Positions 21,750-58,833 of a DNA stretch of 64,000 bases are shown in pieces. Each line of letters starts with the position of its first letter. Position 1 is the first letter of the stretch. Position numbers and translations under genes: made by a program. Location of the stretch: positions 930,001-994,000 of the forward strand of contig CM060734.1 in NCBI GenBank assembly GCA_030704615.1, read 5' to 3'. Source of the stretch: Takakia lepidozioides. Its lineage: Eukaryota; Plantae; Bryophyta. The notes below the pieces were generated by a model. That model did not search any database. It worked only from the letters and a program-made list of their open reading frames with translations, and had not been told where the DNA came from.

Positions 21750-21810
<61 letters not shown>

Positions 21811-25859: not shown

Positions 25860-25872
25860 AAAAGGAATGAGA

Positions 25873-31149: not shown

Positions 31150-31430
31150 ATTACTGAGCCATCGATAGGATGATCCGGCTGCAGTCTAATGGCCAAACTG
31201 ATGTCGTGTCATGCCCCCGAGCCTGCGCTGATCCTCCCAGAGATGTCTGTATCGGAAGGACAAGGCTCCATATCCGCCTCGATAAGGCCCAACCACCTGC
31301 AATAGCACTCCTGCCCAACATCAGTGGCTGAGCTCCCGAGTCCAACAAGACCCGCAGTGGCGGTACTTCTTGCCTGCCGGTCCACTCAAAGAGAAAAATG
31401 CCATCCTGGTTTGTCAACACAAACAACTCC
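31150..31430 (-). pseudogene. Aspartic protease of element C
   Basis: RVLLDSGAQPLMLG. Confidence 0.8.
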
Positions 31431-33618: not shown

Positions 33619-34140
33619 GTAACACTATAAAGCTCTAGTACTAATCTAATAGTGACACGGGTGGGCACCTGTTGCAGTTTAAGGGTCATATCCCAATGGC
33701 TCAGGGCACCTGCACCTGCATCCACCGCAAGAACTCATATGGTTGGCTGGTCATCAACCCAGCCTCACCATAGAAGAAACACTGGTGGTCTTGCTGGTCA
33801 TCACTCCAGCCTCACCACCGACAGCATACTCTAGGATTGACTGGTGATCAAATCCGGCCTAATCCCTATGAAAGCAAGCGCCCACACAAAACCAACACAT
33901 GGCGCACAGTCAAGCATGCAGGTGTTGGGGGGGGATCCAAACACAAGAAATCAAAACATCAACACCCCCACACCAAAATCCAGCTGCAATGCTGATCCTG
34001 CAGAATATCCCAGCCCAAAACCCCGGACTGACTGGCCTCCACCAAGAGAGGCTTTGGCAACTACGAGTACAAGGTAATGAAAATAGTACAGAGATGGAGG
34101 GGAAGAATAGAAGCCCGCCCAAGCAAGATCTAATCCTGAT

Positions 34141-37800: not shown

Positions 37801-38133
37801 AGGGCTGAAACCACTTCGAAAGGAACGCACAACTCGTAAGAGCTTTGCACACGCAGACCATCGCGCAACCATCGTCTTGCTAAAGCCTGCAGCTGTGTTG
37901 TCCTGAACGTGTCCAACCACGATCCCCACCTTCCGACCTCCAAGACGAAACACGGCTCGGTCTTCGTATTGTTGCCTCATCACATGAATGAGCAGCTTGG
38001 TCAAAAGAATGAAGATCAACATCTGCCTCCATTACGTGAAGGCGATTAAAGATGTGTTGCAGCTAACACTATAAGAAAGTTTAGGGTTCACATAAAGCGT
38101 CAAAACAATTGTAGCAGTAGAACGCGGATGCAC

Positions 38134-39458: not shown

Positions 39459-39508
39459 CTAGGGTTTAGGGTTTAGGGTTTTTAGGGTTAGGGTTTAGGG
39501 TTTAGGGT
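39459..39508 (+). repeat. Telomeric tract
   Basis: About 7 TTTAGGG-type units. Confidence 0.95.
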
Positions 39509-41853
39509 TCACATAAAGCGTCAAAACAAGTGTAGCAGTACAACACGGATGCACCGGGTGCAAGAGAAACACGATCTGGGCAAACAAGTTTTAGGGGGGC
39601 CAGTTATGCACCCCTAGAAAAATTTCAGATCCTTTGAATCAAACCTGAAAGGAGAGATCCTGAGAGACAGGAAACTAGAATAGAAGTATGCGAGGTGTCC
39701 TGAAATGCAACTGCAAACCTATGCAAGAGGCAAATGTGCGTATGAGAACTATTTCACTGGATGCACAGGAGAATAAGAACCCTATCTTTGTTTTGCAAGA
39801 AAATGGACACACTAGGAACAACTTAGATGCAGATCTCACATGCACTACTCAAAAGAGAGTTTATGGCATAGAATAGAAATATGCGAGGTGTCCTGAAATG
39901 CAACTGCAAACCTATGCAAGAGGCAAATGTGCGTATGAGAACTATTTCACTGGATGCACAGGAGAATAAGAACCCTATCTTTGTTTTGCAAGAAAATGGA
40001 CACACTAGGAACAACTTAGATGCAGATCTCACATGCACTACTCGAAAGAGAGTTTATGGCATAGAATAGAAATATGCGAGGTGTCCTGAAATGCAACTGC
40101 AAACCTATGCAAGAGGCAAATGTGCGTATGAGAACTATTTCACTGGATGCACAGGAGAATAAGAACCCTATCTCTGTTTTGCAAGAGAATGGACACACTA
40201 AGAACAACTTAGATGCAGATCTCACATGCACTACTCGAAAGGGAGTTTATGGCATGCCGTATAGACACAGAGTTTACATAAAGCATCAAAACAAATGTAG
40301 CAGTACAACGCGGATGCACCGGGTGCAAGATAAACACGATCCGGGCAAACAAGTTTTAGGGGGGCCAGTTATGCACCCCTGGAAAAATTTCAGATCCTGT
40401 GAATCAAACCTGAAAGGAGAGATCCTGAGAGACAGGAAACTAGAATAGAAATATGCGAGGTGTCCTGAAATGCAACTGCAAACCTATGCAAGAGGCAAAT
40501 GTGCGTATGAGAACTATTTCACTGGATGCACAGGAGAATAAGAACCCTATCTCTGTTTTGCAAGAGAATGGACACACTAGGAACAACTTAGATGCAGATC
40601 TCCCATGCACTACTCGAGAGGGAGTTTATGGCATGCCGTATAGACACAGAGCACATAACAATGCAATGATCTAAAGCAGGGGATACAAACGCATCTAAAA
40701 CTCGACAACTTCAAAGGGTGAGACCACGAGGCAAGATCATGCAAAGTAGTGAAGCCAAATCTTTATAGACCCCAGACTAATTTCGCTCAGCGCGTGAGCT
40801 CATAAGTGGGAAAGAAAATGAATGAGATACAAACCCCACCCCCCGCTTATATACTACTAGGAGTGAACTGCCTCGTGTGGACAATCTTCCAGTGGAGGTC
40901 TCGTGCGGAGAAAAACCATCCAACAGATGTCTCGTACGGAGAGAATAGTCCAAAAAGTCTCGGTGGGAGAAAGTCATCCAGTGGATGAAAACAAGTTCTC
41001 GACAAGAGAGAACTAGATCCAAAGAATAAAAATCATCCAAATAGTCAATTGCATATCTCTCAAATACAACTAACTCCGTGAGTTTATGACTATGCAACAA
41101 CCAATTATGCTGAAGTTAGAGCATGTTGTGCAAAGTCGTAAGGGCTGAAACCACTTCGAAAGGAACGCACAACTCGTAAGAGCTTTGCACACGCAGACCA
41201 TCGCGCAACCATCGTCTTGCTAAAGCCTGCAGCTGTGTTGTCCTGAACGTGTCCAACCACGATCCCCACCTTCCGACCTCCAAGACGAAACACGGCTCGG
41301 TCTTCGTATTGTTGCCTCATCACATGAATGAGCAGCTTGGTCAAAAGAATGAAGATCAACATCTGCCTCCAATACGTGAAGGCGATTAAAGATGTGTTGC
41401 AGCTAACACTGTAAGAAAGTTTAGGGTTCACATAAAGCGTCAAAACAAGTGTAGCAGTACAACGCGGATGCACCGGGTGCAAGATAAACACGATCCGGGC
41501 AAACAAGTTTTAGGGGGGCCAGTTATGCACCCCTGGAAAAATTTCAGATCCTGTGAATCAAACCTGAAAGGAGAGATCCTGAGAGACAGGAAACTAGAAT
41601 AGAAGTATGCGAGGTGTCCTGAAATGCAACTGCAAACCTATGCAAGAGGTAAATGTGCGTATGAGAACTATTTCACTGGATGCACAGGAGAATAAGAACC
41701 CTATCTCTGTTTTGCAAGAGAATGGACACACTAGGAACAACTTAGATGCAGATCTCCCATGCACTACTCGAGAGGGAGTTTATGGCATGCCGTATAGACA
41801 CAGAGCACATAACAATGCAATGATCTAAAGCAGGGGATACAAACGCATCTAAA
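39509..41853 (-). mobile_element. Array 2 of the hammerhead unit
   Basis: Partial unit with 3 sub-repeats, restart at ~40277, one full unit, then a truncated unit. Confidence 0.85.
40761..40814 (-). ncRNA. Mutated, probably inactive hammerhead copy
   Basis: CTGATGA>CTTATGA and GAAAC>GAAAT. Confidence 0.75.
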
Positions 41854-41880
41854 AGTTTAGGGTTTAGGGTTTAGGGTTTA
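41854..41880 (+). repeat. Telomeric tract
   Basis: (GTTTAGG)n. Confidence 0.95.
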
Positions 41881-42860
41881 CAAAAGAGTGGAAACAAATA
41901 CATGTAGCAGTGCAACAGAGTTCGAACCGCGAATGCACCGGGTGCATTAGTAGCAAAGTGCAAACAAGTTTTTGGGGGGGCCAGTTATGGACACCTTAGA
42001 AAGCTTGTAGAAATATCTAGCCTGTGATTCAAAACTAAAAGAATCGATCCTGAGACACAAAACTAGAATAGAACAGAGTGGGAGTGATGTTGCAACGTTC
42101 TAAAGTGCAAATGCAAGTATATGCAAGAGGCAAGTGTGTGTGATGAAACTAATTCACTGTAAGGACAGGAGAATAGTAACCTATCTCTGAGAAAGAGAAT
42201 AGACACACTAAAGAGCAGTCTTAGAAGGAGATCTAACATGTAACACTCGAAAAGGAGTTTAAAACATGCACTACAATAGACACAAAGCAAATGAATGCAA
42301 TGAACTATGCAGAAGATCAAATCTAAAACTCAACAAGAACAACAACAACGCCGCCAATGAGACAAAGAGACAAGAACACAAGATGCAGCAAAGCGAATCT
42401 ATATAATCCCCAAACTAGTTTCGCTCAGCGCGTGAGCTCATCAGTGGGAAAGAGAAGGAAAAGAGATACAATGTGCACCCCTCACCCCGCTTATATACTG
42501 CGGAAAGTGAACTTGTCTCCGAGGGGGAGAGAAAATACCTAATGGATGGAAAACATCCAAAATTGTCATGGCTGGAGAGATCGTCCAACACATGAAAACT
42601 TAGATGAAAAACATCCAAAGTTTTCTCGGCAGGGGAGAAATATCCAACGCATGAAAATCTAGATGAAAAACATCCTAATGTTCTCTCCAAAATGGATAAT
42701 CATCCAAACTAGAAGCTAACTGCATGTCTCAAATACAACTAGCCTCTAGGTTTGTAACATAGCACGAACTAGATAGGAACGCAAGTTCCGTGCCCTCTTC
42801 CAACATACCATAGGTCTGTCAAAAGACGCTAACTGCGGAACTTTCAAAAACCCCTCATGA
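41881..42860 (-). mobile_element. Diverged second family of the non-coding hammerhead unit
   Basis: Colinear but clearly diverged from the main unit; retains TGCACCGGGTGCA, GGGGGGCCAGTT, the hammerhead and the TATA. Confidence 0.8.
42407..42452 (-). ncRNA. Type I hammerhead ribozyme (diverged unit family)
   Basis: Same core and stem II as the main family; GUU cleavage triplet. Confidence 0.88.
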
Positions 42861-42923
42861 AGTTTAGGGTTTAGGACTCCCTCAAAGCTTAGAGCTTGAG
42901 TATTAGGGTTTAGGGTTTAGGGT
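42861..42923 (+). repeat. Telomeric tract interrupted by ~27 nt of non-telomeric sequence
   Basis: GTTTAGGGTTTAGG-actccctcaaagcttagagcttgagta-TTAGGGTTTAGGGTTTAGGG. Confidence 0.85.
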
Positions 42924-43739
42924 GGTTAGCAAAGGCTTGCAAAGGTAACAAAAAGTAGAAAAAATACTGGAAAAAGACACAGTAAAAATTAAGGGGGGCC
43001 GGTTCGGACCCAAATACAAATGCAATGGAAACCAAGACAAATGCATACAAAGTGCGCCTATCGTGCCTAAAGGGATGCTATAAGACTATTATGTCTTATG
43101 CAAGGACTCCCGCCCTCACGAGATAAGGTTCTCTAATTGAAGAATGAGGTACTTTCGTTCCAACCGTAAGCTTTTTTATGTTTGCTTCTCCTTGTTTAGC
43201 GACAAAAATCTTGCTCACTATGGCCAAGCATGCGCTCAAGGCACTCACAAACATAGGGTCAAGTCTCAACCCCTAGTTGGAAAACTTATATGCCCCACCT
43301 TCAAAAAGAGGTTCGTACCTCTAAGGAAGAATGGGAGGGATTACCGCATAAGGTCATCGACGAGAAGGTTAGGTCGGCAGAGGCTTGCGCATGCCCATAG
43401 TCCTCTGATCGCTCGAGATGAACTCGAGGGAGGATCAACCAAATCCCTTCTCTCCGACCATCGGGCGTACGACAGAGGGAACCGTGTAGTCGGGGCTAAA
43501 TTAGCTTGCCCGACACGATTACCATATACCCCCAGCCGCCTTCCCCATTGTAAGCGGTGGCTAAGATGGCGTCAAACGGAAGGCTCTATACGCCCGTGCT
43601 TTGGAAAGAAAAAAGGCCTCGGAAGTATCCAAGGGTTGGGATTCCCCTCGGAGCCGAGCACCCCTTCGATCCAAGTTGCCCGGGCGGGCAAGGACTAGAC
43701 TCTCGACTTCTCTAAATGTGGAGACACAAAAAGAGTTAA

Positions 43740-43795
43740 GGTGTTTTATTCCAAACAAGTTTCGCTTGATTGCTCAAGCTCATCAGTGGAACACC
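43740..43795 (-). ncRNA. Type I hammerhead ribozyme (PLE family)
   Basis: Identical to 39035-39090. Confidence 0.9.
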
Positions 43796-44046
43796 AAGAG
43801 ATGAAGTCCTAAGAGCCAAGCCTATCCTTATATACTAGAAAAGCACCCTCACTATGTGCAAACGATATGGGATAATTCCCAAGGCAATAATAATGCCACT
43901 AAAGCACTAATTTAGCCTCCAAGTCAAGACTGCATTAATTAGTCAATGGTCCAAATTAAATTGTTGGAACCCTTTGACTTTAACATCAACACTAGGGCTA
44001 TCAAAGAGGCAAAATTAATAATGCTAGGGACATTTGCACTACAAAA

Positions 44047-45189
44047 TCATCCTATCATTCTAGATTTAACTAGGAATGAACTCAGCTTTCGCGGATTCCT
44101 CCAACAAATCATCGCTCGAGGAAGAAACCGAAGCTCCGGGACTTGCTGAAGCAACTCGTGGAGTCTAGGGTTTAGGGTGGCCCCCAAGTTCAAGGCTCGA
44201 GTGTACGAAGAGTAGTCGAGCTTAAGAACAAGGGGGGCCCGTTTACCCTCAACTGCACGTTGCGTCTGTTGGTCGAGTAGAGCGGATCTGAGGTCGTAGG
44301 AGATCTTGGTGAAGCAACTCCGGATGAACGCCGCCGGATAACCTCGGGCTCGAAGACGTTTGTAAAACAAAAGTCGCAAATGGTTGAACCCTTGGATGGT
44401 GCTTTCTCGTATTACGTACCGTTGGAGCTCGCCGATGACGAAAGCTTTCTTTTGGTGATGTGGATGCCACGAGGACCAAGGCAAGTATTGATACTTGTTC
44501 TGGGCCTTTTGATGACATCTAGTAGAGAGCCGTCGAGTTTGGATGAAGTCGTCTCCTTTGAGGAAGGTGATATCCAAGATGTCGGCGGACGTCGAGCTTA
44601 TGGCGGTCGTGATTTTGATGCCATCGAACATGGAACCGTAGTTCCGTAACCAGGACCGGAGGCTCTTTTCGGAGCCTACCCAGATGCCAAAGCCGTCGTC
44701 GATATAGCGCTTAAGATAAAGCAGCTCTTGCTCCGATGGGCACACGTACTCCATGTACATCTCCAACCGACAGAGGAACAAACAAGCGTAAACAACTGCA
44801 AAGTTGCTCCCCATGGCCGTCCCGCGAATTTGGTGCCAAAAACTACCATTGAACTCAAGGTAATGGTGTTTCAAGACTAATCCAGCGAGGGTCATGATCA
44901 GGTCTTTTTTGTGTTTGGTGAAATTACCTCCAATAGCACATTCGAGCTCATACAAGCCGAGCTCGGTTATGATGCTGGGATATAGAGATTCCACGTCAAA
45001 CGTAAAAAGAAAAGCATGTGAGGGGACCTCGAGTTGGGAAACCTCTCGAAGAAGCGTGAGAGAATCAACCAAATGAGTGGGTTCCTTGAGAAGTACCGGA
45101 AGGAGTTGGTGATGGAGCCAAATTGAAGCATGCTCGAAGATGTAGTCGTTGTAGGAACAAATGGGTCTTCCAACAAGCACGGGTTTGTG
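44047..45189 (-). CDS. Penelope-like reverse transcriptase (N-terminally truncated, frame uninterrupted)
   Basis: HKP..GRPICS, FTFDVESLYPSI, YLEFNGSFWHQIRGTAMGSNFA, KRYIDDGFGIW, ILDITF; PLE thumb YLPWSSWHP..QK and RLRARGYP. Confidence 0.92.
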   Translation of the reverse strand, partial: HKPVLVGRPICSYNDYIFEHASIWLHHQLLPVLLKEPTHLVDSLTLLREVSQLEVPSHAFLFTFDVESLYPSIITELGLYELECAIGGNFTKHKKDLIMTLAGLVLKHHYLEFNGSFWHQIRGTAMGSNFAVVYACLFLCRLEMYMEYVCPSEQELLYLKRYIDDGFGIWVGSEKSLRSWLRNYGSMFDGIKITTAISSTSADILDITFLKGDDFIQTRRLSTRCHQKAQNKYQYLPWSSWHPHHQKKAFVIGELQRYVIRESTIQGFNHLRLLFYKRLRARGYPAAFIRSCFTKISYDLRSALLDQQTQRAVEGKRAPLVLKLDYSSYTRALNLGATLNPRLHELLQQVPELRFLPRAMICWRNPRKLSSFLVKSRMIG

Positions 45190-45214
45190 GGTTTAGGGTT
45201 TAGGGTTTAGGGTT
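45190..45214 (+). repeat. Telomeric tract capping the RT truncation
   Basis: GGTTTAGGGTTTAGGGTTTAGGGTTT. Confidence 0.95.
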
Positions 45215-48200
45215 TACATAAAGCGTCAAAACAAGTGTAGCAGTACAACGCGGATGCACCGGGTGCAAGATAAACACGATCCGGGCAAACAAGTTTTGGG
45301 GGGGCCAGTTATGCACCCCTGGAAAAATTTCAGATCCTGTGAATCAAACCTGAAAGGAGAGATCCTGAGAGACAGGAAACTAGAATAGAAGTATGCGAGG
45401 TGTCCTGAAATGCAACTGCAAACCTATGCAAGAGGCAAATGTGCGTATGAGAACTATTTCACTGGATGCACAGGAGAATAAGAACCCTATCTCTGTTTTG
45501 CAAGAGAATGGACACACTAGGAACAACTTAGATGTAGATCTCACATGCACTACTCGAGAGGGAGTTTATGGCATGTCGTATAGACACAGAGCACATAACA
45601 ATGCAATGATCTAAAGCAGGGGATACAAACGCATCTAAAACTCGACAACTTCAAAGGGTGAGACCACGAGGCAAGATCATACAAAGTAGTGAAGCCAAAT
45701 CTTTATAGACCCCAGACTAGTTTCGCTCGGCGCGTGAGCTCATCAGTGGGAAAGAAAATGAATGAGATACAAACCCCACCCCCCCGCTTATATACTACTA
45801 GGAGTGAACTGCCTCGTGTGGACAATCTTCCAGTGGATGTCTCGTGAGGAGAAAAACCATCCAACAGATGTCTCGTACGGAGAGAATAGTCCAAAAAATC
45901 TCGGTGGGAGAAAGTCATCCAGTGGATGAAAACAAGTTCTCGACAAGAGAGAACTAGATCCAAAGAATAAAAATCATCCAAATAGTCAATTGCACATCTC
46001 TCAAATACAACAACTAACTCCGTGAGTTTATGACTATGCAACAACCAATTATGCTGAAGTTAGAGCATGTCGTGCAAAGTCGTAAGGGCTGAAACCACTT
46101 CGAAAGGAACGCACAAACTCGTAAGAGCTTTGCACACGCAGACCATCGCGCAACCATCGTCTTGCTAAATCATGCAGCTGTGTTGTCCTGAACGTGTCCA
46201 ACCACGATCCCCACCTTCCGACCTCCAAGACGAAACACGGCTCGGTCTTCGTATTGTTGCCTCATCACATGAATGAGCAGCTTGGTCAAAAGAATGAAGA
46301 TCAACATCTGCCTCCATTACGTGAAGGCGATCAAAGATGTGTTGCAGCTAACACTATAAGAAAGTTTAGGGTTCACATAAAGCGTCAAAACAAGTGTAGC
46401 AGTACAACGCGGATGCACCGGGTGCAAGATAAACACGATCCGGGCAAACAAGTTTTGGGGGGGCCAGTTATGCACCCCTGGAAAAATTTCAGATCCTGTG
46501 AATCAAACCTGAAAGGAGAGATCCTGAGAGACAGGAAACTAGAATAGAAGTATGCAAGGTGTCCTGAAATGCAACTGCAAACCTATGCAAGAGGCAAATG
46601 TGCGTATGAGAACTATTTCACTGGATGCACAGGAGAATAAGAACCCTATCTCTGTTTTGCAAGAGAATGGACACACTAGGAACAACTTAGATGTAGATCT
46701 CACATGCACTACTCGAGAGAGTTTTATGGCATGTCGTATAGACACAGAGCACATAACAATGCAATGATCTAAAGCAGGGGATACAAACGCATCTAAAACT
46801 CGACAACTTCAAAGGGTGAGACCACGAGGCAAGATCATACAAAGTAGTGAAGCCAAATCTTTATAGACCCCAGACTAGTTTCGCTCGGCGCGTGAGCTCA
46901 TCAGTGGGAAAGAAATGAATGAGATACAAACCCCCCCCCCCCCGCTTATATACTACTAGGAGTGAACTGCCTCGTGTGGACAATCTTCCAGTGGATGTCT
47001 CGTGAGGAGAAAAACCATCCAACAGATGTCTCGTACGGAGAGAATAGTCCAAAAAATCTCGGTGGGAGAAAGTCATCCAGTGGATGAAAACAAGTTCTCG
47101 ACAAGAGAGAACTAGATCCAAAGAATAAAAATCATCCAAATAGTCAATTGCACATCTCTCAAATACAACTAACTCCGTGAGTTTATGACTATGCAACAAC
47201 CAATTATGCTGAAGTTAGAGCATGTCGTGCAAAGTCGTAAGGGCTGAAACCACTTCGAAAGGAACGCACAAACTCGTAAGAGCTTTGCACACGCAGACCA
47301 TCGCGCAACCATCGTCTTGCTAAATCATGCAGCTGTGTTGTCCTGAACGCGTGTCAACCACGATCCCCACCTTCCGACCTCCAAGACGAAACACGGCTCG
47401 GTCTTCGTATTGTTGCCTCATCACATGAATGAGCAGCTTGGTCAAAAGAATGAAGATCAACATCTGCCTCCATTACGTGAAGGCGATCAAAGATGTGTTG
47501 CAGCTAACACTATAAGGAAGTTTAGGGTTCACATAAAGCGTCAAAACAAGTGTAGCAGTACAACGCGGATGCACCGGGTGCAAGATAAACACGATCCGGG
47601 CAAACAAGTTTTGGGGGGGCCAGTTATGCACCCCTGGAAAAATTCAGATCCTGTGAATCAAACCTGAAAGGAGAGATCCTGAGAGACAGGAAACTAGAAT
47701 AGAAGTATGCGAGGTGTCCTGAAATGCAACTGCAAACCTATGCAAGAGGCAAATGTGCGTATGAGAACTATTTCACTGGATGCACAGGAGAATAAGAACC
47801 CTATCTCTGTTTTGCAAGAGAATGGACACACTAGGAACAACTTAGATGTAGATCTCACATGCACTACTCACTACGAGAGGGAGTTTATGGCATGTCGTAT
47901 AGACACAGAGCACATAACAATGCAATGATCTAAAGCAGGGGATACAAACGCATCTAAAACTCGACAACTTCAAAGGGTGAGACCACGAGGCAAGATCATG
48001 CAAAGTAGTGAAGCCAAATCTTTATAGACCCCAGACTAGTTTCGCTCGGCGCGTGAGCTCATCAGTGGGAAAGAAAAGGAATGAGATACAACCCCACCCC
48101 CCCCCCGCTTATATACTACTAGGAGTGAACTGCCTCGTGTGGACAATCTTCCAGTGGATGTCTCGTGAGGAGAAAAACCATCCAACAGATGTCTCGTACG

Positions 48201-48343
48201 GAGAGAATAGTCCAAAAAATCTCGGTGGAGAAAGTCATCCAGTGGATGAAAACAAGTTCTCGACAAGAGAGAACTAGATCCAAAGAATAAAAATCATCCA
48301 AATAGTCAATTGCACATCTCTCAAATACAACTAACTCCGTGAG
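45215..48343 (-). mobile_element. Array 3: ~2.7 units of ~1155 bp; hammerheads at ~45701-45754, 46859-46912, 48020-48073
   Basis: Head-to-tail units joined at AAAGTTTAGGGTTCACAT; all three share a stem II variant. Confidence 0.9.
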
Positions 48344-48387
48344 TTTAGGGTTTAGGGTTTTAGGGTTAGGGTTTAGGGTTTAGGGTT
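48343..48387 (+). repeat. Telomeric tract
   Basis: About 6 TTTAGGG-type units. Confidence 0.95.
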
Positions 48388-51300
48388 CACATAAAGCGTC
48401 AAAACAAGTGTAGCAGTACAACGCGGATGCACCTGGTGCAAGATAAACACGATCCGGGCAAACGAGTTTTAGGGGGGGCCAGTTATGCACCCTGGAAAAA
48501 TTTCAGATCCTGTGAATCAAAGCTGAAAGGAGAGATCCTGAGAGACAGGAAACTAGAATAGATGTATGCAAGGTGTCCTGAAATGCAACTGCAAACCTAT
48601 GCAAGAGGCAATGTGCGTATGAGAACTATTTCACTGGATGCACAGGAGAATAAGAACCCTATCTCTGTTTTGCAAGAGAATGGACACACTAGGAACAACT
48701 TAGATGCAGATCTCACATGCACTACTCGAGAGGGAGTTTATGGCATGTCGTATAGACACAGAGCACATAACAATGCAATGATCTAAAGCAGGGGATACAA
48801 ACGCATCTAAAACTCGACAACTTCAAAGGGTGAGACCACGAGGCAAGATCATGCAAAGTAGTGAAGCCAAATCTTTATAGACCCCAGACTAGTTTCGCTC
48901 AGCGCGTGAGCTCATCAGTGGGAAAGAAAATGAATGAGATACAAACCCCCCCCCCCCCGCTTATATACTACTAGGAGTGAACTGCCCGTGTGGACAATCT
49001 TCCAGTGGATGTCTCGTGAGGAGAAAAACCATCCAACAAATGTCTCGTACGGAGAGAATAGTCCAAAAAGTCTCGGTGGGAGAAAGTCATCCAGTGGATG
49101 AAAACAGTTCTCGACAAAGAGAGACTAGATCCAAAGAATAAAAATCATCCAAATAGTCAATTGCATATCTCTAAAATACAACTAACTCCGTGAGTTTATG
49201 ACTATGCAACAACCAATTATGCTGAAGTTAGAGCATGTCGTGCAAAGTCGTAAGGGCTGAAACCACTTCGAAAGGAACGCACAACTCGTAAGAGCTTTGC
49301 ACACGCAGACCATCGCGCAACCATCGTCTTGCTAAAGCATGCAGCTGTGTTGTCCTGAACGTGTCCAACCACGATCCCACCTTCCGACCTCCAAGACGAA
49401 ACACGGCTCGGTCTTCGTATTGTTGCCTCATCACATGAATGAGCAGCTTGGTCAAAGAATGAAGATCAACATCTGCCTCCATTACGTGAAGGCGATTAAA
49501 GATGTGTTGCAGCTAACACTTATAGAAAGTTTAGGGTTCACATAAAGCGTCAAAACAAGTGTAGCAGTACAACGCGGATGCACCGGGTGCAAGATAAACA
49601 CGATCCGGGCAAACAAGTTTTAGGGGGGGCCAGTTATGCACCCCTGGAAAAATTTCAGATCCTGTGAATCAAACCTGAAAGGAGAGATCCTGAGAGACAG
49701 GAAACTAGAATAGAAGTATGCGAGGTGTCCTGAAATGCAACTGCAAACCTATGCAAGAGGCAAATGTGCGTATGAGAACTATTTCACTGGATGCACAGGA
49801 GAATAAGAACCCTATCTCTGTTTTGCAAGAGAATGGACACACTAGGAACAACTTAGATGCAGATCTCACATGCACTACTCGAGAGGGAGTTTATGGCATG
49901 TCGTATAGACACAGAGCACATAACAATGCAATGATCTAAAGCAGGGGATACAAACGCATCTAAAACTCGACAACTTCAAAGGTGAGACCACGAGGCAAGA
50001 TCATGCAAAGTAGTGAAGCCAAATCTTTATAGACCCCAGACTAGTTTCGCTCAGCGCGTGAGCTCATCAGTGGGAAAGAAAAGGAATGAGATACAAACCC
50101 CACCCCCCGCTTATATACTACTAGGAGTGAACTGCCTCGTGTGGACAATCTTCCAGTGGATGTCTCGTGAGGAGAAAAACCATCCACAGATGTCTCGTAC
50201 GGAGAGAATAGTCCAAAAAAGTCTCGGTGGGAGAAAGTCATCCAGTGGATGAAAACAAGTTCTCGACAAGAGAGAACTAGATCCAAAGAATAAAAATCAT
50301 CCAAAAGTCAATTGCATATCTCTCAAATACAACTAACTCCGTGAGTTTATGACTATGCAACAACCAATTATGCTGAAGTTAGAGCATGTTGTGCAAAGTC
50401 GTAAGGGCTGAAACCACTTCGAAAGGAACGCACAACTCGTAAGAGCTTTGCACACGCAGACCATCGCGCAACCATCGTCTTGCTAAAGCCTGCAGCTGTG
50501 TTGTCCTGAACGTGTCCAACCACGATCCCCACCTTCCGACCTCCAAGACGAAACACGGCTCGGTCTTCGTATTGTTGCCTCATCACATGAATGAGCAGCT
50601 TGGTCAAAAAATGAAGATCAACATCTGCCTCCATTACGTGAAGGCGATTAAAGATGTGTTGCAGCTAACACTATAAGAAAGTTTAGGGTTCACATAAAGC
50701 GTCAAAACAAGTGTAGCAGTACAACGCGGATGCACCGGGTGCAAGATAAACACGATCCGGGCAAACAAGTTTTGGGGGCCAGTTATGCACCCCTGGAAAA
50801 ATTTCAGATCCTGTGAATCAAACCTGAAAGGAGAGATCCTGAGAGACAGGAAACTAGAATAGAAGTATGCGAGGTGTCCTGAAATGCAACTGCAAACCTA
50901 TGCAAGAGGCAAATGTGCGTATGAGAACTATTTCACTGGATGCACAGGAGAATAAGAACCCTATCTCTGTTTTGCAAGAGAATGGACACACTAGGAACAA
51001 CTTAGATGTAGATCTCACATGCACTACTCGAGAGGGAGTTATGGCATGTCGTATAGACACAGAGCACAAATACAATGCATGATCTAAAGCAGGGGATACA
51101 AACGCATCTAAAACTCGACAACTTCAAAGGGTGAGACCACGAGGCAAGATCATGCAAAGTAGTGAAGCCAAATCTTTATAGACCCCAGACTAGTTTCGCT
51201 CAGCGCGTGAGCTCATCAGTGGGAAAGAAAAGGAATGAGATACAAACCCCCCCCCCCGCTTATATACTACTACTAGGAGTGAACTGCCTCGTGTGGACAA

Positions 51301-51500
51301 TCTTCCAGTGGATGTCTCGTGAGGAGAAAAACCATCCAAGATGTCTCGTACGGAGAGAATAGTCCAAAAAGTCTCGGTGGGAGAAAGTCATCCCAGTGGA
51401 TGAAAACAAGTTCTCGACAAGAGAGAACTAGATCCAAAGAATAAAAATCATCCAAATAGTCAATTGCATATCTCTCAAATACAACTAACTCCGTGAGTTT
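48388..51500 (-). mobile_element. Array 4: ~2.7 units; hammerheads at ~48873-48926, 50025-50078, 51174-51227
   Basis: Same unit; ends at the same GAGTTTA site as array 3. Confidence 0.9.
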
Positions 51501-51638
51501 ATGGTTAGGGTTTTAGGTTAGGGTTTATGGTTTAGGGTTCACATAAAGCTCGAAAACAAGGTTTAGGGTTTAGGGTTTAGGGTTTAGGGGTTAGGGTTAG
51601 GGTTTAGGGGTTAGGGTTAGGGTTTAGGGTTTAGGGTT
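51497..51638 (+). repeat. Telomeric tract containing a ~21-nt abortive unit start (51540-51560)
   Basis: TTTAGGG variants flank CACATAAAGCTCGAAAACAAG. Confidence 0.9.
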
Positions 51639-54600
51639 CACATAAAGCGTCAAAACAAGTGTAGCAGTACAACGCGGATGCACCGGGTGCAAGATAAACA
51701 CGATCCGGGCAAACAAGTTTTAGGGGGGCCAGTTATGCACCCCTGGAAAAATTTCAGATCCTGTGAATCAAACCTGAAAGGAGAGATCCTGAGAGACAGG
51801 AAACTAGAATAGAAATATGCGAGGTGTCCTGAAATGCAACTGCAAACCTATGCAAGAGGCAAATGTGCGTATGAGAACTATTTCACTGGATGGACACAGG
51901 AGAATAAGAACCCTATCTCTGTTTTGCAAGAGAATGGACACACTAGGAACAACTTAGATGCAGATCTCACATGCACTACTCGAAAGGGAGTTTATGGCAT
52001 AGAATAGAAGTATGCGAGGTGTCCTGAAATGCAACTGCAAACTTATGCAAGAGGCAAATGTGCGTATGAGAACTATTTCACTGGATGCACAGGAGAATAA
52101 GAACCCTATCTCTGTTTTGCAAGAGAATGGACACACTAGGAACAACTTAGATGCAGATCTCACATGCACTACTCGAAAGGGAGTTTATGGCATGCCGTAT
52201 AGACACAGAGCACATAACAATGCAATGATCTAAAGCAGGGGATACAAACGCATCTAAAACTCGACAACTTCAAAGGGTGAGACCACGAGGCAAGATCATG
52301 CAAAGTAGTGAAGCCAAATCTTTATAGACCCCAGACTAGTTTCGCTCAGCGCGTGAGCTCATCAGTGGGAAAGAAAAGGAATGAGATACAAACCCCACCC
52401 CCCGCTTATATACTACTAGGAGTGAACTGCCTCGTGTGGACAATCTTCCAGTGGATGTCTCGTGAGGAGAAAAACCATCCAAGAGATGTCTCGTACGGAG
52501 AGAATAGTCCAAAAAGTCTCGGTGGGAGAAAGTCATCCAGTGGATGAAAACAAGTTCTCGACAAGAGAGAACTAGATCCAAAGAATAAAAATCATCCAAA
52601 TAGTCAATTGCATATCTCTCAAATACAACTAACTCCGTGAGTTTATGACTATGCAACAACCAATTATGCTGAAGTTAGAGCATGTTGTGCAAAGTCGTAA
52701 GGGCTGAAACCACTTCGAAAGGAACGCACAACTCGTAAGAGCTTTGCACACGCAGACCATCGCGCAACCATCGTCTTGCTAAAGCCTGCAGCTGTGTTGT
52801 CCTGAACGTGACCAACCACGATCCCCACCTTCCGACCTCCAAGACGAAACACGGCTCGGTCTTCGTATTGTTGCCTCATCACATGAATGAGCAGCTTGGT
52901 CAAAAGAATGAAGATCAACATCTGCCTCCATTACGTGAAGGCGATTAAAGATGTGTTGCAGCTAACACTGTAAGAAAGTTTAGGGTTCACATAAAGCGTC
53001 AAAACAAGTGTAGCAGTACAACGCGGATGCACCGGGTGCAAGATAAACACGATCCGGGCAAACAAGTTTTAGGGGGGCCAGTTATGCACCCCTGGAAAAA
53101 TTTCAGATCCTGTGAATCAAACCTGAAAGGAGAGATCCTGAGAGACAGGAAACTAGAATAGAAATATGCGAGGTGTCCTGAAATGCAACTGCAAACCTAT
53201 GCAAGAGGCAAATGTGCGTATGAGAACTATTTCACTGGATGCACAGGAGAATAAGAACCCTATCTCTGTTTTGCAAGAGAATGGACACACTAGGAACAAC
53301 TTAGATGCAGATCTCACATGCACTACTCGAAAGGGAGTTTATGGCATAGAATAGAAGTATGCGAGGTGTCCTGAAATGCAACTGCAAACTTATGCAAGAG
53401 GCAAATGTGCGTATGAGAACTATTTCACTGGATGCAGGAGAATAAGAACCCTATCTCTGTTTTGCAAGAGAATGGACACACTAGGAACAACTTAGATGCA
53501 GATCTCACATGCACTACTCGAAAGGGAGTTTATGGCATGCCGTATAGACACAGAGCACATAACAATGCAATGATCTAAAGCAGGGGATACAAACGCATCT
53601 AAAACTCGACAACTTCAAAGGGTGAGACCACGAGGCAAGATCATGCAAAGTAGTGAAGCCAAATCTTTATAGACCCCAGACTAGTTTCGCTCAGCGCGTG
53701 AGCTCATCAGTGGGAAAGAAAAGGAATGAGATACAAACCCACCCCCCGCTTATATACTACTAGGAGTGAACTGCCTCGTGTGGACAATCTTCCAGTGGAT
53801 GTCTCGTGAGGAGAAAAACCATCCAAGAGATGTCTCGTACGGAGAGAATAGTCCAAAAAGTCTCGGTGGGAGAAAGTCATCCAGTGGATGAAAACAAGTT
53901 CTCGACAAGAGAGAACTAGATCCAAAGAATAAAAATCATCCAAATAGTCAATTGCATATCTCTCAAATACAACTAACTCCGTGAGTTTATGACTATGCAA
54001 CAACCAATTATGCTGAAGTTAGAGCATGTTGTGCAAAGTCGTAAGGGCTGAAACCACTTCGAAAGGAACGCACAACTCGTAAGAGCTTTGCACACGCAGA
54101 CCATCGCGCAACCATCGTCTTGCTAAAGCCTGCAGCTGTGTTGTCCCGAACGTGACCAACCACGATCCCCACCTTCCGACCTCCAAGACGAAACACGGCT
54201 CGGTCTTCGTATTGTTGCCTCATCACATGAATGAGCAGCTTGGTCAAAAGAATGAAGATCAACATCTGCCTCCATTACGTGAAGGCGATTAAAGATGTGT
54301 TGCAGCTAACACTGTAAGAAAGTTTAGGGTTCACATAAAGCGTCAAAACAAGTGTAGCAGTACAACGCGGATGCACCGGGTGCAAGATAAACACGATCCG
54401 GGCAAACAAGTTTTAGGGGGGCCAGTTATGCACCCCTGGAAAAATTTCAGATCCTGTGAATCAAACCTGAAAGGAGAGATCCTGAGAGACAGGAAACTAG
54501 AATAGAAATATGCGAGGTGTCCTGAAATGCAACTGCAAACCTATGCAGAGGCAAATGTGCGTATGAGAACTATTTCACTGGATGCACAGGAGAATAAGAA

Positions 54601-57600
54601 CCCTATCTCTGTTTTGCAAGAGAATGGACACACTAGGAACAACTTAGATGCAGATCTCACATGCACTACTCGAAAGGGAGTTTATGGCATAGAATAGAAG
54701 TATGCGAGGTGTCCTGAAATGCAACTGCAAACTTATGCAAGAGGCAAATGTGCGTATGAGAACTATTTCACTGGATGCACAGGAGAATAAGAACCCTATC
54801 TCTGTTTTGCAAGAGAATGGACACACTAGGAACAACTTAGATGCAGATCTCACATGCACTACTCGAAAGGGAGTTTATGGCATGCCGTATAGACACAGAG
54901 CACATAACAACAATGCAATGATCTAAAGCAGGGGATACAAACGCATCTAAAACTCGACAACTTCAAAGGGTGAGACCACGAGGCAAGATCATGCAAAGTA
55001 GTGAAGCCAAATCTTTATAGACCCCAGACTAGTTTCGCTCAGCGCGTGAGCTCATCAGTGGGAAAGAAAAGGAATGAGATACAAACCCCACCCCCCGCTT
55101 ATATACTACTAGGAGTGAACTGCCTCGTGTGGACAATCTTCCAGTGGATGTCTCGTGAGGAGAAAAACCATCCAAGAGATGTGTCTCGTACGGAGAGAAT
55201 AGTCCAAAAAGTCTCGGTGGGAGAAAGTCATCCAGTGGATGAAAACAAGTTCTCGACAAGAGAGAACTAGATCCAAAGAATAAAAATCATCCAAATAGTC
55301 AATTGCATATCTCTCAAATACAACTAACTCCGTGAGTTTGACTATGCAACAACCAATTATGCTGAAGTTAGAGCATGTTGTGCAAAGTCGTAAGGGCTGA
55401 AACCACTTCGAAATGAACGCACAACTCGTAAGAGCTTTGCACACGCAGACCATCGCGCAACCACCATCGTCTTGCTAAAGCCTGCAGCTGTGTTGTCCCG
55501 AACGTGACCAACCACGATCCCCACCTTCCGACCTCCAAGACGAAACACGGCTCGGTCTTCGTATTGTTGCCTCATCACATGAATGAGCAGCTTGGTCAAA
55601 AGAATGAAGATCAACATCTGCCTCCATTACGTGAAGGCGATTAAAGATGTGTTGCAGCTAACACTGTAAGAAAGTTTAGGGTTCACATAAAGCGTCAAAA
55701 CAAGTGTAGCAGTACAACGCGGATGCACCGGGTGCAAGATAAAACACGATCCGGGCAAACAAGTTTTAGGGGGCCAGTTATGCACCCCTGGAAAAATTTC
55801 AGATCCTGTGAATCAAACCTGAAAGGAGAGATCCTGAGAGACAGGAAACTAGAATAGAAATATGCGAGGTGTCCTGAAATGCAACTGCAAACCTATGCAA
55901 GAGGCAAATGTGCGTATGAGAACTATTTCACTGGATGCACAGGAGAATAAGAACCCTATCTCTGTTTTGCAAGAGAATGGACACACTAGGAACAACTTAG
56001 ATGCAGATCTCACATGCACTACTCGAAAGGGAGTTTATGGCATAGAATAGAAGTATGCGAGGTGTCCTGAAATGCAACTGCAAACTTATGCAAGAGGCAA
56101 ATGTGCGTATGAGAACTATTTCACTGGATGCACAGGAGAATAAGAACCCTATCTCTGTTTTGCAAGAGAATGGACACACTAGGAACAACTTAGATGCAGA
56201 TCTCACATGCACTACTCGAAAGGGAGTTTATGGCATGCCGTATAGACACAGAGCAACACATAACAATGCAATGATCTAAAGCAGGGGATACAAACGCATC
56301 TAAAACTCGACAACTTCAAAGGGTGAGACCACGAGGCAAGATCATGCAAAGTAGTGAAGCCAAATCTTTATAGACCCCAGACTAGTTTCGCTCAGCGCGT
56401 GAGCTCATCAGTGGGAAAGAAAAGGAATGAGATACAAACCCCACCCCACCCGCTTATATACTACTAGGAGTGAACTGCCTCGTGTGGACAATCTTCCAGT
56501 GGATGTCTCGTGAGGAGAAAAACCATCCAAGAGATGTCTCGTACGGAGAGAATAGTCCAAAAAGTCTCGGTGGGAGAAAGTCATCCAGTGGATGAAAACA
56601 AGTTCTCGACAAGAGAGAACTAGATCCAAAGAATAAAAATCATCCAAATAGTCAATTGCATATCTCTCAAATACAACTAACTCCGTGAGTTTATGACTAT
56701 GCAACAACCAATTATGCTGAAGTTAGAGCATGTTGTGCAAAGTCGTAAGGGCTGAAACCACTTCGAAATGAACGCACAACTCGTAAGAGCTTTGCACACG
56801 CAGACCATCGCGCAACCATCGTCTTGCTAAAGCCTGCAGCTGTGTTGTCCGAACGTGACCAACCACGATCCCCACCTTCCGACCTCCAAGACGAAACACG
56901 GCTCGGTCTTCGTATTGTTGCCTCATCACATGAATGAGCAGCTTGGTCAAAAGAATGAAGATCAACATCTGCCTCCATTACGTGAAGGCGATTAAAGATG
57001 TGTTGCAGCTAACACTGTAAGAAAGTTTAGGGTTCACATAAAGCGTCAAAACAAGTGTAGCAGTACAACGCGGATGCACCGGGTGCAAGATAAACACGAT
57101 CCGGGCAAACAAGTTTTAGGGGGGCCAGTTATGCACCCCTGGAAAAATTTCAGATCCTGTGAATCAAACCTGAAAGGAGAGATCCTGAGAGACAGGAAAC
57201 TAGAATAGAAATATGCGAGGTGTCCTGAAATGCAACTGCAAACCTATGCAAGAGGCAAATGTGCGTATGAGAACTATTTCACTGGATGCACAGGAGAATA
57301 AGAACCCTATCTCTGTTTTGCAAGAGAATGGACACACTAGGAACAACTTAGATGCAGATCTCACATGCACTACTCGAAAGGGAGTTTATGGCATAGAATA
57401 GAAGTATGCGAGGTGTCCTGAAATGCAACTGCAAACTTATGCAAGAGGCAAATGTGCGTATGAGAACTATTTCACTGGATGCACAGGAGAATAAGAACCT
57501 ATCTCTGTTTTGCAAGAGAATGGACACACTAGGAACAACTTAGATGCAGATCTCACATGCACTACTCGAAAGGGAGTTTATGGCATGCCGTATAGACACA

Positions 57601-58333
57601 GAGCACATAACAATGCAATGATCTAAAGCAGGGGATACAAACGCATCTAAAACTCGACAACTTCAAAGGGTGAGACCACGAGGCAAGATCATGCAAAGTA
57701 GTGAAGCCAAATCTTTATAGACCCCAGACTAGTTTCGCTCAGCGCGTGAGCTCATCAGTGGGAAAGAAAAGAATGAGATACAAACCCCACCCCCCGCTTA
57801 TATACTACTAGGAGTGAACTGCCTCGTGTGGACAATCTTCCAGTGGATGTCTCGTGAGGAGAAAAACCATCCAAGAGATGTCTCGTACGGAGAGAATAGT
57901 CCAAAAAGTCTCGGTGGGAGAAAGTCATCCAGTGGATGAAAACAAGTTCTCGACAAGAGAGAACTAGATCCAAAGAATAAAAATCATCCAAATAGTCAAT
58001 TGCATATCTCTCAAATACAACTAACTCCGTGAGTTTATGACTATGCAACAACCAATTATGCTGAAGTTAGAGCATGTTGTGCAAAGTCGTAAGGGCTGAA
58101 ACCACTTCGAAATGAACGCACAACTCGTAAGAGCTTTGCACACGCAGACCATCGCGCAACCATCGTCTTGCTAAAGCCTGCAGCTGTGTTGTCCCGAACG
58201 TGACCAACCACGATCCCCACCTTCCGACCTCCAAGACGAAACACGGCTCGGTCTTCGTATTGTTGCCTCATCACATGAATGAGCAGCTTGGTCAAAAAGA
58301 ATGAAGATCACATCTGCCTCCATTACGTGAAGG
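51639..58333 (-). mobile_element. Array 5: ~5 units of ~1345 bp (two 193-bp sub-repeats each); hammerheads at ~52320-52373, 53665-53718, 55013-55066, 56366-56419, 57713-57766
   Basis: Head-to-tail units running into the assembly gap. Confidence 0.9.
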
Positions 58334-58833
58334 NNNNNNNNNNNNNNNNNNNNNNNNNNNNNNNNNNNNNNNNNNNNNNNNNNNNNNNNNNNNNNNNNNN
58401 NNNNNNNNNNNNNNNNNNNNNNNNNNNNNNNNNNNNNNNNNNNNNNNNNNNNNNNNNNNNNNNNNNNNNNNNNNNNNNNNNNNNNNNNNNNNNNNNNNNN
58501 NNNNNNNNNNNNNNNNNNNNNNNNNNNNNNNNNNNNNNNNNNNNNNNNNNNNNNNNNNNNNNNNNNNNNNNNNNNNNNNNNNNNNNNNNNNNNNNNNNNN
58601 NNNNNNNNNNNNNNNNNNNNNNNNNNNNNNNNNNNNNNNNNNNNNNNNNNNNNNNNNNNNNNNNNNNNNNNNNNNNNNNNNNNNNNNNNNNNNNNNNNNN
58701 NNNNNNNNNNNNNNNNNNNNNNNNNNNNNNNNNNNNNNNNNNNNNNNNNNNNNNNNNNNNNNNNNNNNNNNNNNNNNNNNNNNNNNNNNNNNNNNNNNNN
58801 NNNNNNNNNNNNNNNNNNNNNNNNNNNNNNNNN
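58334..58833. other. Assembly gap (500 N)
   Basis: Run of N. Confidence 1.

Follow-up and report, generated by a model that had tools for sequence, protein, structure and literature searches.

Hammerhead-bearing repeat arrays that begin at a telomere-complementary seed in Takakia lepidozioides, and the likely nature of their template

A stack of repeat arrays, Penelope-like element pieces and short telomere tracts occupies 21.9–58.3 kb of a 64,000 nt stretch of Takakia lepidozioides DNA (GenBank assembly GCA_030704615.1, contig CM060734.1, positions 930,001 to 994,000; termed the window). It appears to be a fossil record of additions by a Penelope-like reverse transcriptase (RT) that were templated by long uncut read-through multimers, with some DNA duplication. 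The probability given to this explanation as a whole is about 0.5. Primed retro-addition is well supported. The original prediction was that each array was copied from one circular template. Of this, seed-primed retro-addition from a multi-unit template stands and the circularised monomer does not. A monomeric RNA circle is neither needed nor favoured, and long uncut multimeric transcripts together with some DNA-level duplication fit better.

The repeat unit is approximately 1156 nt in length and the reference copy is at 46374–47529 on the minus strand. A longer form of 1345 nt is due to doubling of a 193-bp sub-repeat. The unit displays no open reading frame greater than 117 aa and no open reading frame is conserved between units. 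Each unit has one internal seed, GTTTAGGGTT (RNA sense AACCCUAAAC), exemplified at 46364–46373 (minus strand), and the seed-plus-start motif is found 17 times in the window. Going downstream from a ribozyme cut, the seed is reached after 499 nt and the following cut 657 nt beyond it.

A type-I hammerhead is predicted in the reference unit at 46862–46915 (minus strand, core at 46878–46904). The predicted cut is after GUC, between plus-strand positions 46873 and 46872 (offset 500|499). Helix III consists of a 2-bp stem with the palindrome ACUAGU and helix I is open; a helix III of this type resembles that of dimer-dependent ribozymes (PMC4209133). Folded alone, the hammerhead is no better than shuffled sequences, as expected for a dimer-dependent motif. 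Minus-strand type-I cores of the form CUGAUGA...GAAA with helices I and II number 16 in the window, where 0 are expected, and there is one hammerhead per unit in all units. All 16, as well as the RT open reading frame described below, are on the strand whose RNA complements the G-strand. Rfam searches, at the gathering threshold and also with E-values up to 10, gave no match to the unit hammerhead, and the Penelope-like tail gave a sub-threshold type-III match (19.6 bits compared with the 48.5 needed). Thus the ribozyme call rests on the core motif and helices.

A TATA box, AGTATATAAG, is at 46945–46954 (minus strand), about 45 nt upstream of the hammerhead core. It is conserved in the unit, in the diverged family B and in the Penelope-like tail, and the TATA-plus-hammerhead module is common to all three. 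The layout of the unit would be a TATA box, a type-I hammerhead, a 500-nt body and a telomere-complementary motif, and the unit may represent a protein-free relative of the ribozyme-bearing end of a Penelope-like element.

The most proximal telomere tract of the stack is at 21920–21941 (plus strand). It is followed by array 0, the oldest, which spans 21942–38133 (minus strand) in three pieces, 21942–23658, 25521–25873 and 37483–38133. Array 0 has about 2 units, begins at offset 10 and finishes at offset 45, and is interrupted by an insertion at 23659–25520 and by a Ty3/gypsy element at 25874–37482 with a 4-bp duplication. At 38218–39460 (minus strand) the Penelope-like tail is present as a short copy that carries a TATA box and hammerhead (39054–39081) of its own; it terminates at the internal telomere-like stretch of the Penelope-like element. 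Next is an irregular telomere-like tract at 39465–39509 (plus strand) with repeat lengths of 7-7-9-6-7-7, near-identical to the tract at 48344–48387.

Array 1′ (39510–40272, minus strand) begins with the seed, contains three copies of the 193-bp sub-repeat and breaks off at offset 376. Array 1″ (40273–41854, minus strand) re-starts at the seed and has 1.37 units that end at offset 425. Its junction, TTTA|CATAAAG, is of the same form as the start of array 3, and its hammerhead core is mutated. Family B, a diverged relative of the unit (about 74% identity), is at 41877–42862 (minus strand) with telomere tracts on both sides and carries its TATA box and a hammerhead at 42418–42444.

A 5′-truncated Penelope-like element is found at 42923–45188 (minus strand). 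Its tail has a TATA box and a hammerhead at 43759–43786. An RT open reading frame fragment at 44047–45180 (minus strand) runs through a telomere-like stretch at 44164–44180 and stops 260 nt before the tail hammerhead. The fragment has 84 relatives, which are Penelope-type RTs with E-values from 2e-179 (best) to 1e-100, among them sequences of Selaginella and conifers. Many of these relatives, including Selaginella and Cryptomeria proteins, carry PF00078, PF28514 and PF26215. With respect to the GIY-YIG domain, the close relatives (580–620 aa) list no PF01541 and two distant matches do; the copy in the window is 5′-truncated. A Penelope-clade RT is therefore present in the stack as a fragment and not as a full gene.

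The distal part of the stack consists of arrays 3, 4 and 5 and their tracts. A regular telomere tract at 45189–45214 (plus strand) is the putative primer of array 3, which is at 45215–48343 (minus strand) and has 2.70 units that end at offset 812, inside GAGTTTA. Tract 2 (48344–48387, plus strand) has six repeats with lengths of 7-7-8-6-7-7. Array 4 (48388–51504, minus strand) also has 2.70 units and ends at offset 814. Tract 3 (51505–51560, plus strand) repeats tract 2 in degenerate form before a 21-nt unit start at 51540–51560. Tract 4 (51561–51638, plus strand) has 11 repeats and a 20-nt period, and six of the 11 repeats are irregular. Array 5 (51639–58333, minus strand) has 4.96 units of the 1345-nt form and is cut by a 500-N assembly gap at 58334–58833. 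The arrays had been described as seamless multimers; this holds for arrays 3, 4 and 5 (2.70, 2.70 and at least 4.96 units), but array 5 stops at the gap and has no natural end, thus its count of "at least 5" units reflects the assembly.

The prediction that arrays begin at the internal seed is borne out, as arrays 3, 4 and 5 start right after TTTAGGG tracts (at 45215, 48388 and 51639). Unit offset 1–3 also follows TTTAGGG at 39510, at 40275 and at the 21-nt abortive start at 51540. In total, seven junctions between telomere tract and unit are at offset 1–10 of 1156, and no array uses the ribozyme cut (offset 499/500) as its start. The 21-nt unit start breaks off into telomere repeats, and the re-start at 40273 is mid-unit and exactly at the seed. 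Every element in 21.9–58.3 kb begins, on the plus strand, directly after a TTTAGGG tract, and all tracts are on the plus strand. The junctions thus show the annealing and priming step. Cut sites are read through in 17 of 17 cases in the window, which shows that in the copied templates the ribozyme was routinely uncut or resealed. The telomere-like microhomology GAGTTTA at offset 806–812 may have served for re-capping at distal ends.

In the favoured explanation, 21.9–58.3 kb would represent at least ten successive additions to a G-strand 3′ end, made by the RT of a Penelope-like element that lacks the endonuclease. Either the TTTAGGG 3′ end of the chromosome or that of the preceding cDNA would anneal to the motif or to a longer telomere-like tail in minus-strand RNA and prime copying, which would continue through the ribozyme and promoter into further units. 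The template would be a long transcript that reads through a pre-existing tandem array and stays uncut, and daughter arrays would inherit the unit type, internal differences, end point and irregular leading tract of the parent. Erosion or RT stalling, and then re-capping at telomere-like microhomologies, would set the distal ends, and local DNA-level duplication probably added units or whole blocks later.

A multimeric linear template is favoured by the read-through of all 17 cut sites, by the length, end point and irregular tract that arrays 3 and 4 have in common, by differences among the units of one array at sites that also vary from array to array, and by the variation of sub-repeat number within arrays 0 and 1. 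Penelope-like RT is reported to initiate internally and to have unprocessed RNA as its main substrate (PMC11167929), and Penelope hammerheads cut poorly and act as dimers (PMC4209133). The density of private substitutions in the units declines along the stack, being about 8 per kb proximally and about 1 per kb distally, as predicted by sequential end addition. Against the favoured explanation, the uniform arrays 3 and 5 need homogeneous parent arrays, and the question of uniformity is thereby moved one step back.

Units within an array had been said to share private variants. This is the case for arrays 3 and 5, but array 4 has none. In array 3 the stem-II variant and TGCACATCTC are restricted to its three units, exactly as described, and private variants are found at offsets 514, 683 and 780 (three units) and at 897, 952 and 1115 (the two units that reach them). 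In array 5, AACTTATGC is present without change in all five units and nowhere else. CCAAGAGATG is likewise found in five of five units and is absent from other unit copies; its only other matches are to the two Penelope-like tail copies, at 39089 and 43794. The doubled 193-bp sub-repeat is confirmed, with copy-specific bases in 5/5 units, and private variants are at offsets 210 (second sub-repeat copy), 650 and 980/981. Divergence within arrays is 0.50% in array 3, 1.10% in array 4 and 0.26% in array 5, and between arrays it is 1.2–2.3%; the internal divergence of array 4 is thus about the between-array level. Array 4 has many 1-nt homopolymer indels, which may be consensus errors, and the within-array evidence as a whole consists of a few single-base differences in an assembled repeat beside a gap, some of which may be errors.

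Two sites, 84 and 683, appeared to be shared by arrays 3 and 4; the raw sequence indicates a homopolymer-length alignment artefact. A further source considered for the shared sites, gene conversion from array 3 to the initial unit of array 4, was rejected, in that shared and unshared sites interleave at distances down to 2 nt (952/954).

A phylogeny of units from many chromosome ends had been expected to cluster by array. In the window, arrays 3 (support 89/91) and 5 (98/93) form clades, but array 4 as a clade is rejected by the AU test (p 0.017) and is heterogeneous and paraphyletic. The units of array 5 form a ladder, a|b|c,d,e, which is defined by offsets 971 and 888 (90/85 and 90/86). Array 3 splits as a,b|c (94/86), and c keeps the ancestral base at 466 and 543. 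A single circle predicts star-like units; arrays 3 and 5 are ladders and a circularised-monomer template is therefore not supported. Variants shuffled across arrays and stepwise gradients had both been named beforehand as contrary to the circle, and the features of arrays 3, 4 and 5 are of these kinds. A tree that was star-like at first could be hidden by DNA exchange at a later time or by errors of assembly.

Array 3 with its tract and array 4 with its tract form a 3.16-kb higher-order repeat of 2.007 copies with 98.9% identity over aligned bases. Common to the two are the 2.70-unit length, the end offset (812/814) and the following irregular six-repeat tract, which has the same 8-nt and 6-nt irregular repeats in both and whose last 30 nt recur exactly in front of array 1′. 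Independent arrays would be expected to differ in number of turns, end point and primer tract, and arrays 3 and 4 do not. These shared properties point to copying of whole arrays as packages, and from the sequence comparison arrays 3 and 4 appear to be copies of one block and not two independent products. Their units do not pair by position, which is against a simple parent-copy relation.

Amplification at the DNA level is a possible explanation for the arrays as a whole, although a rather improbable one. One unit and a part, or a block, would be added first, and growth would follow by unequal exchange, slippage and duplication of the 3.16-kb block, which leaves start and end offsets unchanged. 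Unequal exchange is an accepted route of satellite growth. It has also been invoked for animal retrozymes (bioRxiv 10.64898/2026.07.22.740005). The array 5 ladder follows the physical order of the units, and the higher-order repeat of arrays 3 and 4 is in accord with block duplication. But read-through of the cut site and promoter in even the shortest additions is not explained, nor is the exact 30-nt match of tract ends before arrays 1′ and 4, which are 9 kb apart and in different contexts. The six or seven variants that are fixed in array 3 and absent from array 4 would need repeated conversion in three units, and the proposed exchange points have in common only about 30 nt of homologous sequence.

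Rolling-circle copying, a mechanism already put forward for type-I retrozymes (PMC7229834), is plausible as such but appears unlikely here. Hammerhead-cut monomers would be ligated to circles of 1.16 or 1.35 kb, a G-overhang would prime on the seed, and an RT without RNase H would pass around the circle several times to give a uniform array per event. Arrays 3 and 5 would then be cDNAs of such circles and their ladders the result of later DNA exchange or assembly noise. Several properties agree with this: the clades of arrays 3 and 5 with their private variants; the same doubled sub-repeat and copy-specific bases in every array 5 unit; the position of the array ends, none of which coincides with the cut site or is close to the predicted start of transcription, as though a 5′ end were missing from the template; and the first junction base of array 3, which is T where internal junctions have C and is consistent with a primer-derived base. 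A dimer-dependent helix III would also spare monomeric circles from re-cutting (PMC4209133). On the other hand, no array is star-like. Array 4 is distal and should be younger than the uniform array 3, yet it is as diverse as unrelated units. Two independent runs would have to stop at 2.70 turns and then gain the same irregular tract, sub-repeat number changes within arrays 0 and 1, and TTTA is present at the 40273 re-start although there is no telomere primer from which it could derive. Folded as a circle, the unit RNA shows no unusual stability relative to shuffled sequence (z = −1.2), and much the same holds for the plus strand, which is a weak negative result. If true, arrays 3 and 5 would be the first genomic footprint of chromosome-end extension templated by circular RNA, and the element the first type-I "telomeric retrozyme" in plants.

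Copying without RNA, in which an eroded telomeric 3′ end invades a 10-nt seed elsewhere and starts break-induced replication of the ALT-like type, would also put array starts at the seed after a telomere tract and would copy the donor end point and following tract as in arrays 3 and 4, but it is very improbable: ten bases are very little homology for strand invasion, ribozyme-sense RNA complements the G-strand in 16/16 cases, and the stack holds 5′-truncated RT-gene pieces, tails that start at their own RNA 3′ ends, a 21-nt abortive start and an RT gene of the telomere-attaching type.

Four public sequence runs were compared with the 1156-nt unit; all four consist of contigs and none is on record as RNA. 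Two of the runs, guessed to be RNA, have only relatives of 91–95% identity that cover offsets 1–421 and 511–1020 and leave the cut site uncovered, and contigs of this kind cannot show ends or circles. DNA contigs display the joint where the 1156-nt unit goes back to its start, which confirms tandem DNA only. Two metagenome scans with the ribozyme sequence gave no match. The window is inside a piece of more than 59 Mb and is not terminal on the chromosome today; as the stack runs into a scaffold gap, a mis-join is possible.

Returning to the favoured explanation of read-through templates copied by a Penelope-like RT, the closest known systems include the endonuclease-deficient Penelope-like elements. 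These elements (Athena, Coprina) are reported from Selaginella, fungi, protists and rotifers, and attach to G-rich overhangs via reverse-complement telomeric repeats near hammerhead motifs (PMC8557442, PMC4209133). The stack has in common with these elements the 5′-truncated, same-facing copies with short telomere tracts between them, a type-I hammerhead and TATA-type promoter in the repeated end (PMC8557442, PMC4209133), and an RT fragment of that type. Unlike Penelope-like elements, the unit has no open reading frame, its priming motif is internal and not at a ribozyme-made 3′ end, and as many as five or more copies of it are joined head to tail. Tandem Penelope-like elements and their ribozyme passengers have been proposed to arise by template jumping, from read-through templates or from RNA circles. 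In this respect the stack would be of value as a record of about ten events, dated and in order, whose junctions are resolved to the base. Among them are initiation at an internal 10-nt motif, a start that was aborted, a re-start in the middle of a unit, re-capping at telomere-like microhomologies and arrays that carry their leading tract.

The metazoan non-LTR retrozymes are also non-coding tandem units, each with a type-I hammerhead that in many cases depends on dimers. They are presumed to make use of Penelope-like RTs, and a primed circular RNA that yields tandem cDNA has already been proposed for them (PMC7229834; bioRxiv 10.64898/2026.07.22.740005). In animals the units are 170–400 nt and lack both a telomere-complementary priming site and telomere tracts where the arrays begin, whereas here they are 1156 or 1345 nt with plant-type TTTAGGG repeats. 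Metazoan retrozyme circles have been demonstrated on gels; the element described here is known from DNA sequence. The plant LTR retrozymes, which form circular RNAs of 600–1000 nt (PMC4918200, PMC5680766), are likewise non-autonomous plant retroelements with hammerheads. They differ in having type-III hammerheads in true LTRs, a primer-binding site, a polypurine tract, target duplications and Gypsy helpers, none of which is seen here; the unit has a type-I topology and no LTRs, and its arrays are bounded by telomere tracts. A plant, telomere-primed, non-coding element with a type-I hammerhead was not found in the literature searched.

Drosophila HeT-A, TART and TAHRE similarly form head-to-tail stacks of 5′-truncated retro-additions at the ends of chromosomes, in which the 3′ end of the RNA is directed toward the centromere (PMC5537684). 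They are non-LTR elements, poly(A)-primed and without a ribozyme, and they replace telomerase, whereas here telomerase-type repeats alternate with the elements. The telomerase RNA template is a further parallel. The 10-nt seed complements about 1.4 telomere repeats and aligns the G-strand 3′ end, and by analogy slippage and repeated copying of the seed could account for the irregular 6- and 8-nt repeats next to the arrays. Unlike a telomerase template, copying here passes the boundary and runs on for kilobases. The element would thus join telomerase-like templating to retroelement parasitism.

A chain of repeated elements punctuated by TTTAGGG tracts is found at 21.9–58.3 kb. The tracts are on the plus strand only (30 matches versus 0.02 expected over the whole window). 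The arrays were mapped by a BLAST of the reference unit (46374–47529, a 1156-nt minus-strand repeat with a hammerhead ribozyme) against the window. Array 0, the most proximal, has about two units (21942–23658, 25521–25873 and 37483–38133), is split by two insertions and ends at offset 45 of the unit. Array 1′ (39510–40272) is 0.33 unit with the 193-bp sub-repeat present three times and ends at offset 376; array 1′′ (40273–41854) has 1.37 units and ends at offset 425. Array 3 (45215–48343) and array 4 (48388–51504) have 2.70 units each, with end offsets of 812 and 814. Array 5 (51639–58333) is of a 1345-nt form with a doubled sub-repeat. At least five units were proposed for it and 4.96 are counted, however the array is cut by a 500-N gap at 58334–58833. 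No unit or telomere motif is present beyond the gap in the window. The contig end may be a true chromosome end that scaffolding mis-joined, or part of the array may just be missing from the assembly.

Both insertions in array 0 are in the same unit. One is an 11.6 kb Ty3/gypsy element (25874–37482, minus strand) that displays RNase H, integrase and PHD open reading frames at 26219–28196, TG..CA ends and a 4-bp GAGA duplication. The other (23659–25520) contains a 292-bp tandem repeat at 24229–25468 (4.3 copies, 80% matches). Immediately left of the first telomere tract is a satellite-like array of 144–175 bp repeats with a 60-T run (20587–21810), which may mark where the end originally broke or was healed. 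Further upstream, similar blocks of 10-bp CACAG-type repeats (11112–11322 and 19008–19224) are 7.9 kb apart and flank open reading frames at 12803–18832; they probably represent the terminal repeats of a further retroelement.

The plus-strand start of each element in the 21.9–58.3 kb stack directly follows a telomere tract. This is a known signature of endonuclease-less Penelope-like elements (PMC8557442) and is seen in every element here. The unit-start motif follows a tract at 39510, 45215, 48388, 51540 and 51639, and elsewhere follows the internal 10-nt telomere-complementary seed GTTTAGGGTT; the start of array 0 is shifted 9 nt further into the unit. The ribozyme cut, predicted in the reference unit between plus-strand positions 46873 and 46872 (offset 500|499), is at no array boundary, and in the window all 17 such sites are read through. 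The original prediction that arrays begin at the seed and not at the cut is thus upheld. The boundaries show that a TTTAGGG-type 3′ end primes on a minus-strand RNA, at its telomere-complementary motif or beside it, that copying passes through ribozyme and promoter into further units, and that the end is re-capped afterwards. At 40262–40285 copying stops at offset 376 and restarts at the seed, with TTTA separating the two. The junction matches that at the start of array 3 in form, although the restart has no telomere tract before it.

Each unit displays a minus-strand hammerhead core (CUGAUGA, a 5-bp helix II, GAAA and ACUAGUC). There are 16 cores in the window versus 0 expected, all on the minus strand. 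Helices I and II are recovered by folding, and helix III is the palindrome ACUAGU with a 2-bp stem, the dimer-dependent type-I form found in Penelope-like elements and animal satellites (PMC4209133). No Rfam model reaches threshold for these hammerheads. A TATA box about 45 nt upstream of the core is conserved across the unit, a relative that is 74% identical (family B, 41877–42862) and a third element. No open reading frame is conserved in the unit. The core is lost in the full unit of array 1′′ (40766–40810, where CUGAUGA and ACUAGU are both changed), and the remaining 13 complete unit ribozymes are intact; the loss is consistent with the proximal arrays being older. Substitutions private to a unit number about 8 per kb in arrays 0 and 1 but only about 1 per kb in arrays 3 and 5, which fits successive additions at a growing end.

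Arrays 3 and 4 were treated as separate in the original prediction, but they are not independent. They are equal in length and share the end site GAGTTTA(TG). A tract of six repeats comes after each, with one and the same irregular order of lengths (two normal, 8 nt, 6 nt, two normal), and a unit start follows both tracts; after array 4 it stops at 21 nt. Arrays 3 and 4 with this 21-nt stub form 2.007 copies of one 3.16-kb block, with 98.9% identity across the aligned bases. An exact copy of the final 30 nt of the irregular tract stands before array 1′, 9 kb off and behind a different element. A fresh telomerase-made tract would not reproduce such an irregular pattern. Thus the tract travels with the array and belonged to the template, whether this was DNA or read-through RNA from an existing array. 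Telomere-like tracts that were irregular from birth, with 6- and 8-nt repeats, are beside the young arrays (39480–39509, 48358–48387, 51510–51539 and 51561–51638), and one has a 20-nt period. These could reflect inheritance, or reverse transcriptase slippage with repeated telomerase-style copying of the 10-nt seed. The common end point of arrays 3 and 4 is attributable to the resemblance of GAGTTTA to the telomere repeat. Other arrays also end at small telomere-like matches and the Penelope copies at an internal telomere-like stretch, thus the end points are uninformative on the RNA 5′ end.

The template would be a long uncut multimeric transcript of a pre-existing array, from which daughter arrays would take over unit type, internal differences, end point and leading tract. 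Such a template calls for fewer steps than a circle, which would have to be cut, ligated and copied by strand-displacing synthesis. It agrees with data on a Penelope-like reverse transcriptase, where initiation is internal, unprocessed RNA is the main substrate and no reads end at the ribozyme site (PMC11167929). Penelope hammerheads show weak activity (PMC4209133). The restart at 40273 and the 21-nt stub show that the enzyme, or the end, readily switches templates. Additional DNA-level duplication on top of retro-addition is likely. Multimeric read-through RNA together with some DNA-level duplication is given a probability of about 0.5. A purely DNA-level origin of the multimers is considered doubtful.

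The original prediction held that each array was copied from one circular monomer. One circle copied repeatedly would give units identical at birth, a star tree and differences each confined to a single unit. Arrays 3 and 5 are indeed uniform. Both strings assigned to array 3 are restricted, exactly, to its three units, and AACTTATGC is in all five units of array 5 and nowhere else. CCAAGAGATG is likewise in all five and in no other unit copy, but also occurs once in each Penelope tail, the ribozyme-bearing end (39089 and 43794). The two copies of the doubled sub-repeat differ at the same two sites in 5/5 units. Array 4, however, has no private variant. In the maximum-likelihood tree array 5 is a clade (98/93), as is array 3 (89/91), and arrays 3 and 4 group together (84/86); array 4 is paraphyletic, and its constraint as a clade is rejected (AU test, p 0.017). 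Substitution divergence is 0.26% within array 5, 0.50% in array 3, 1.10% in array 4 and 1.78% in array 0, and 1.2–2.3% between arrays. Array 4 has twice the diversity of array 3 despite its distal position, where a younger age is expected; most of this diversity must therefore date from the birth of the array or stem from assembly error. Array 4 also has sixteen 1-nt indels, mainly in short homopolymers. The raw sequence of array 5 displays a ladder in physical order, position 971 being derived in units b–e and 888 in c–e (branch support 90/85 and 90/86). In array 3, the bases at 466 and 543 are derived in units a and b and ancestral in c. With ladder, split and paraphyly, none of the three arrays is star-like; ladder and paraphyly are patterns named beforehand as contrary to a circle. 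Besides the uniformity of arrays 3 and 5, several points favour a circle: neither the cut nor the predicted transcription start coincides with an array end, array 3 has T at its first junction versus C at internal junctions, as a primer-derived base would give, and a dimer-dependent helix III would shield circles from re-cutting. A monomer circle is possible but unproven, unlikely overall and, in its pure form, contradicted. When folded as a circle the unit shows no unusual stability (z −1.2). Break-induced copying free of RNA is highly improbable.

Unit-like contigs in two runs guessed to be RNA are only 91–95% relatives, covering offsets 1–421 and 511–1020 (46374–47393), and continue into unrelated sequence. 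This may reflect transcription of a diverged relative of the unit, with the part upstream of the TATA box included. Metagenome scans gave no further copies.

The stack also contains Penelope-like sequences. At 44047–45180 an open reading frame on the minus strand represents a fragment of a Penelope-like reverse transcriptase, with 84 relatives (best E-value 2e-179), including Selaginella and conifer proteins, most of which are without an endonuclease domain. It is continuous through the telomere-like stretch at 44164–44180, thus 42923–45188 is a single 5′-truncated copy of an autonomous element; it has its own TATA box and hammerhead tail. A shorter copy (38218–39460) ends at the internal telomere-like stretch of the element. 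In endonuclease-less Penelope-like elements the C-rich RNA tail anneals to the G-overhang (PMC8557442), and those at telomeres, including the ones of a spike moss, carry hammerheads (PMC8557442, PMC4209133). Animals have non-coding type-I hammerhead tandem repeats, for which tandem cDNA from primed circular RNA has been proposed (PMC7229834; bioRxiv 10.64898/2026.07.22.740005). Unlike these, the present arrays are in a plant host, have a 1.16-kb unit and an internal, telomerase-template-like priming motif, and are bounded by telomere tracts, a combination not found described in the literature searched. The general kind of element is already known; it is in this combination of features that the Takakia arrays differ.
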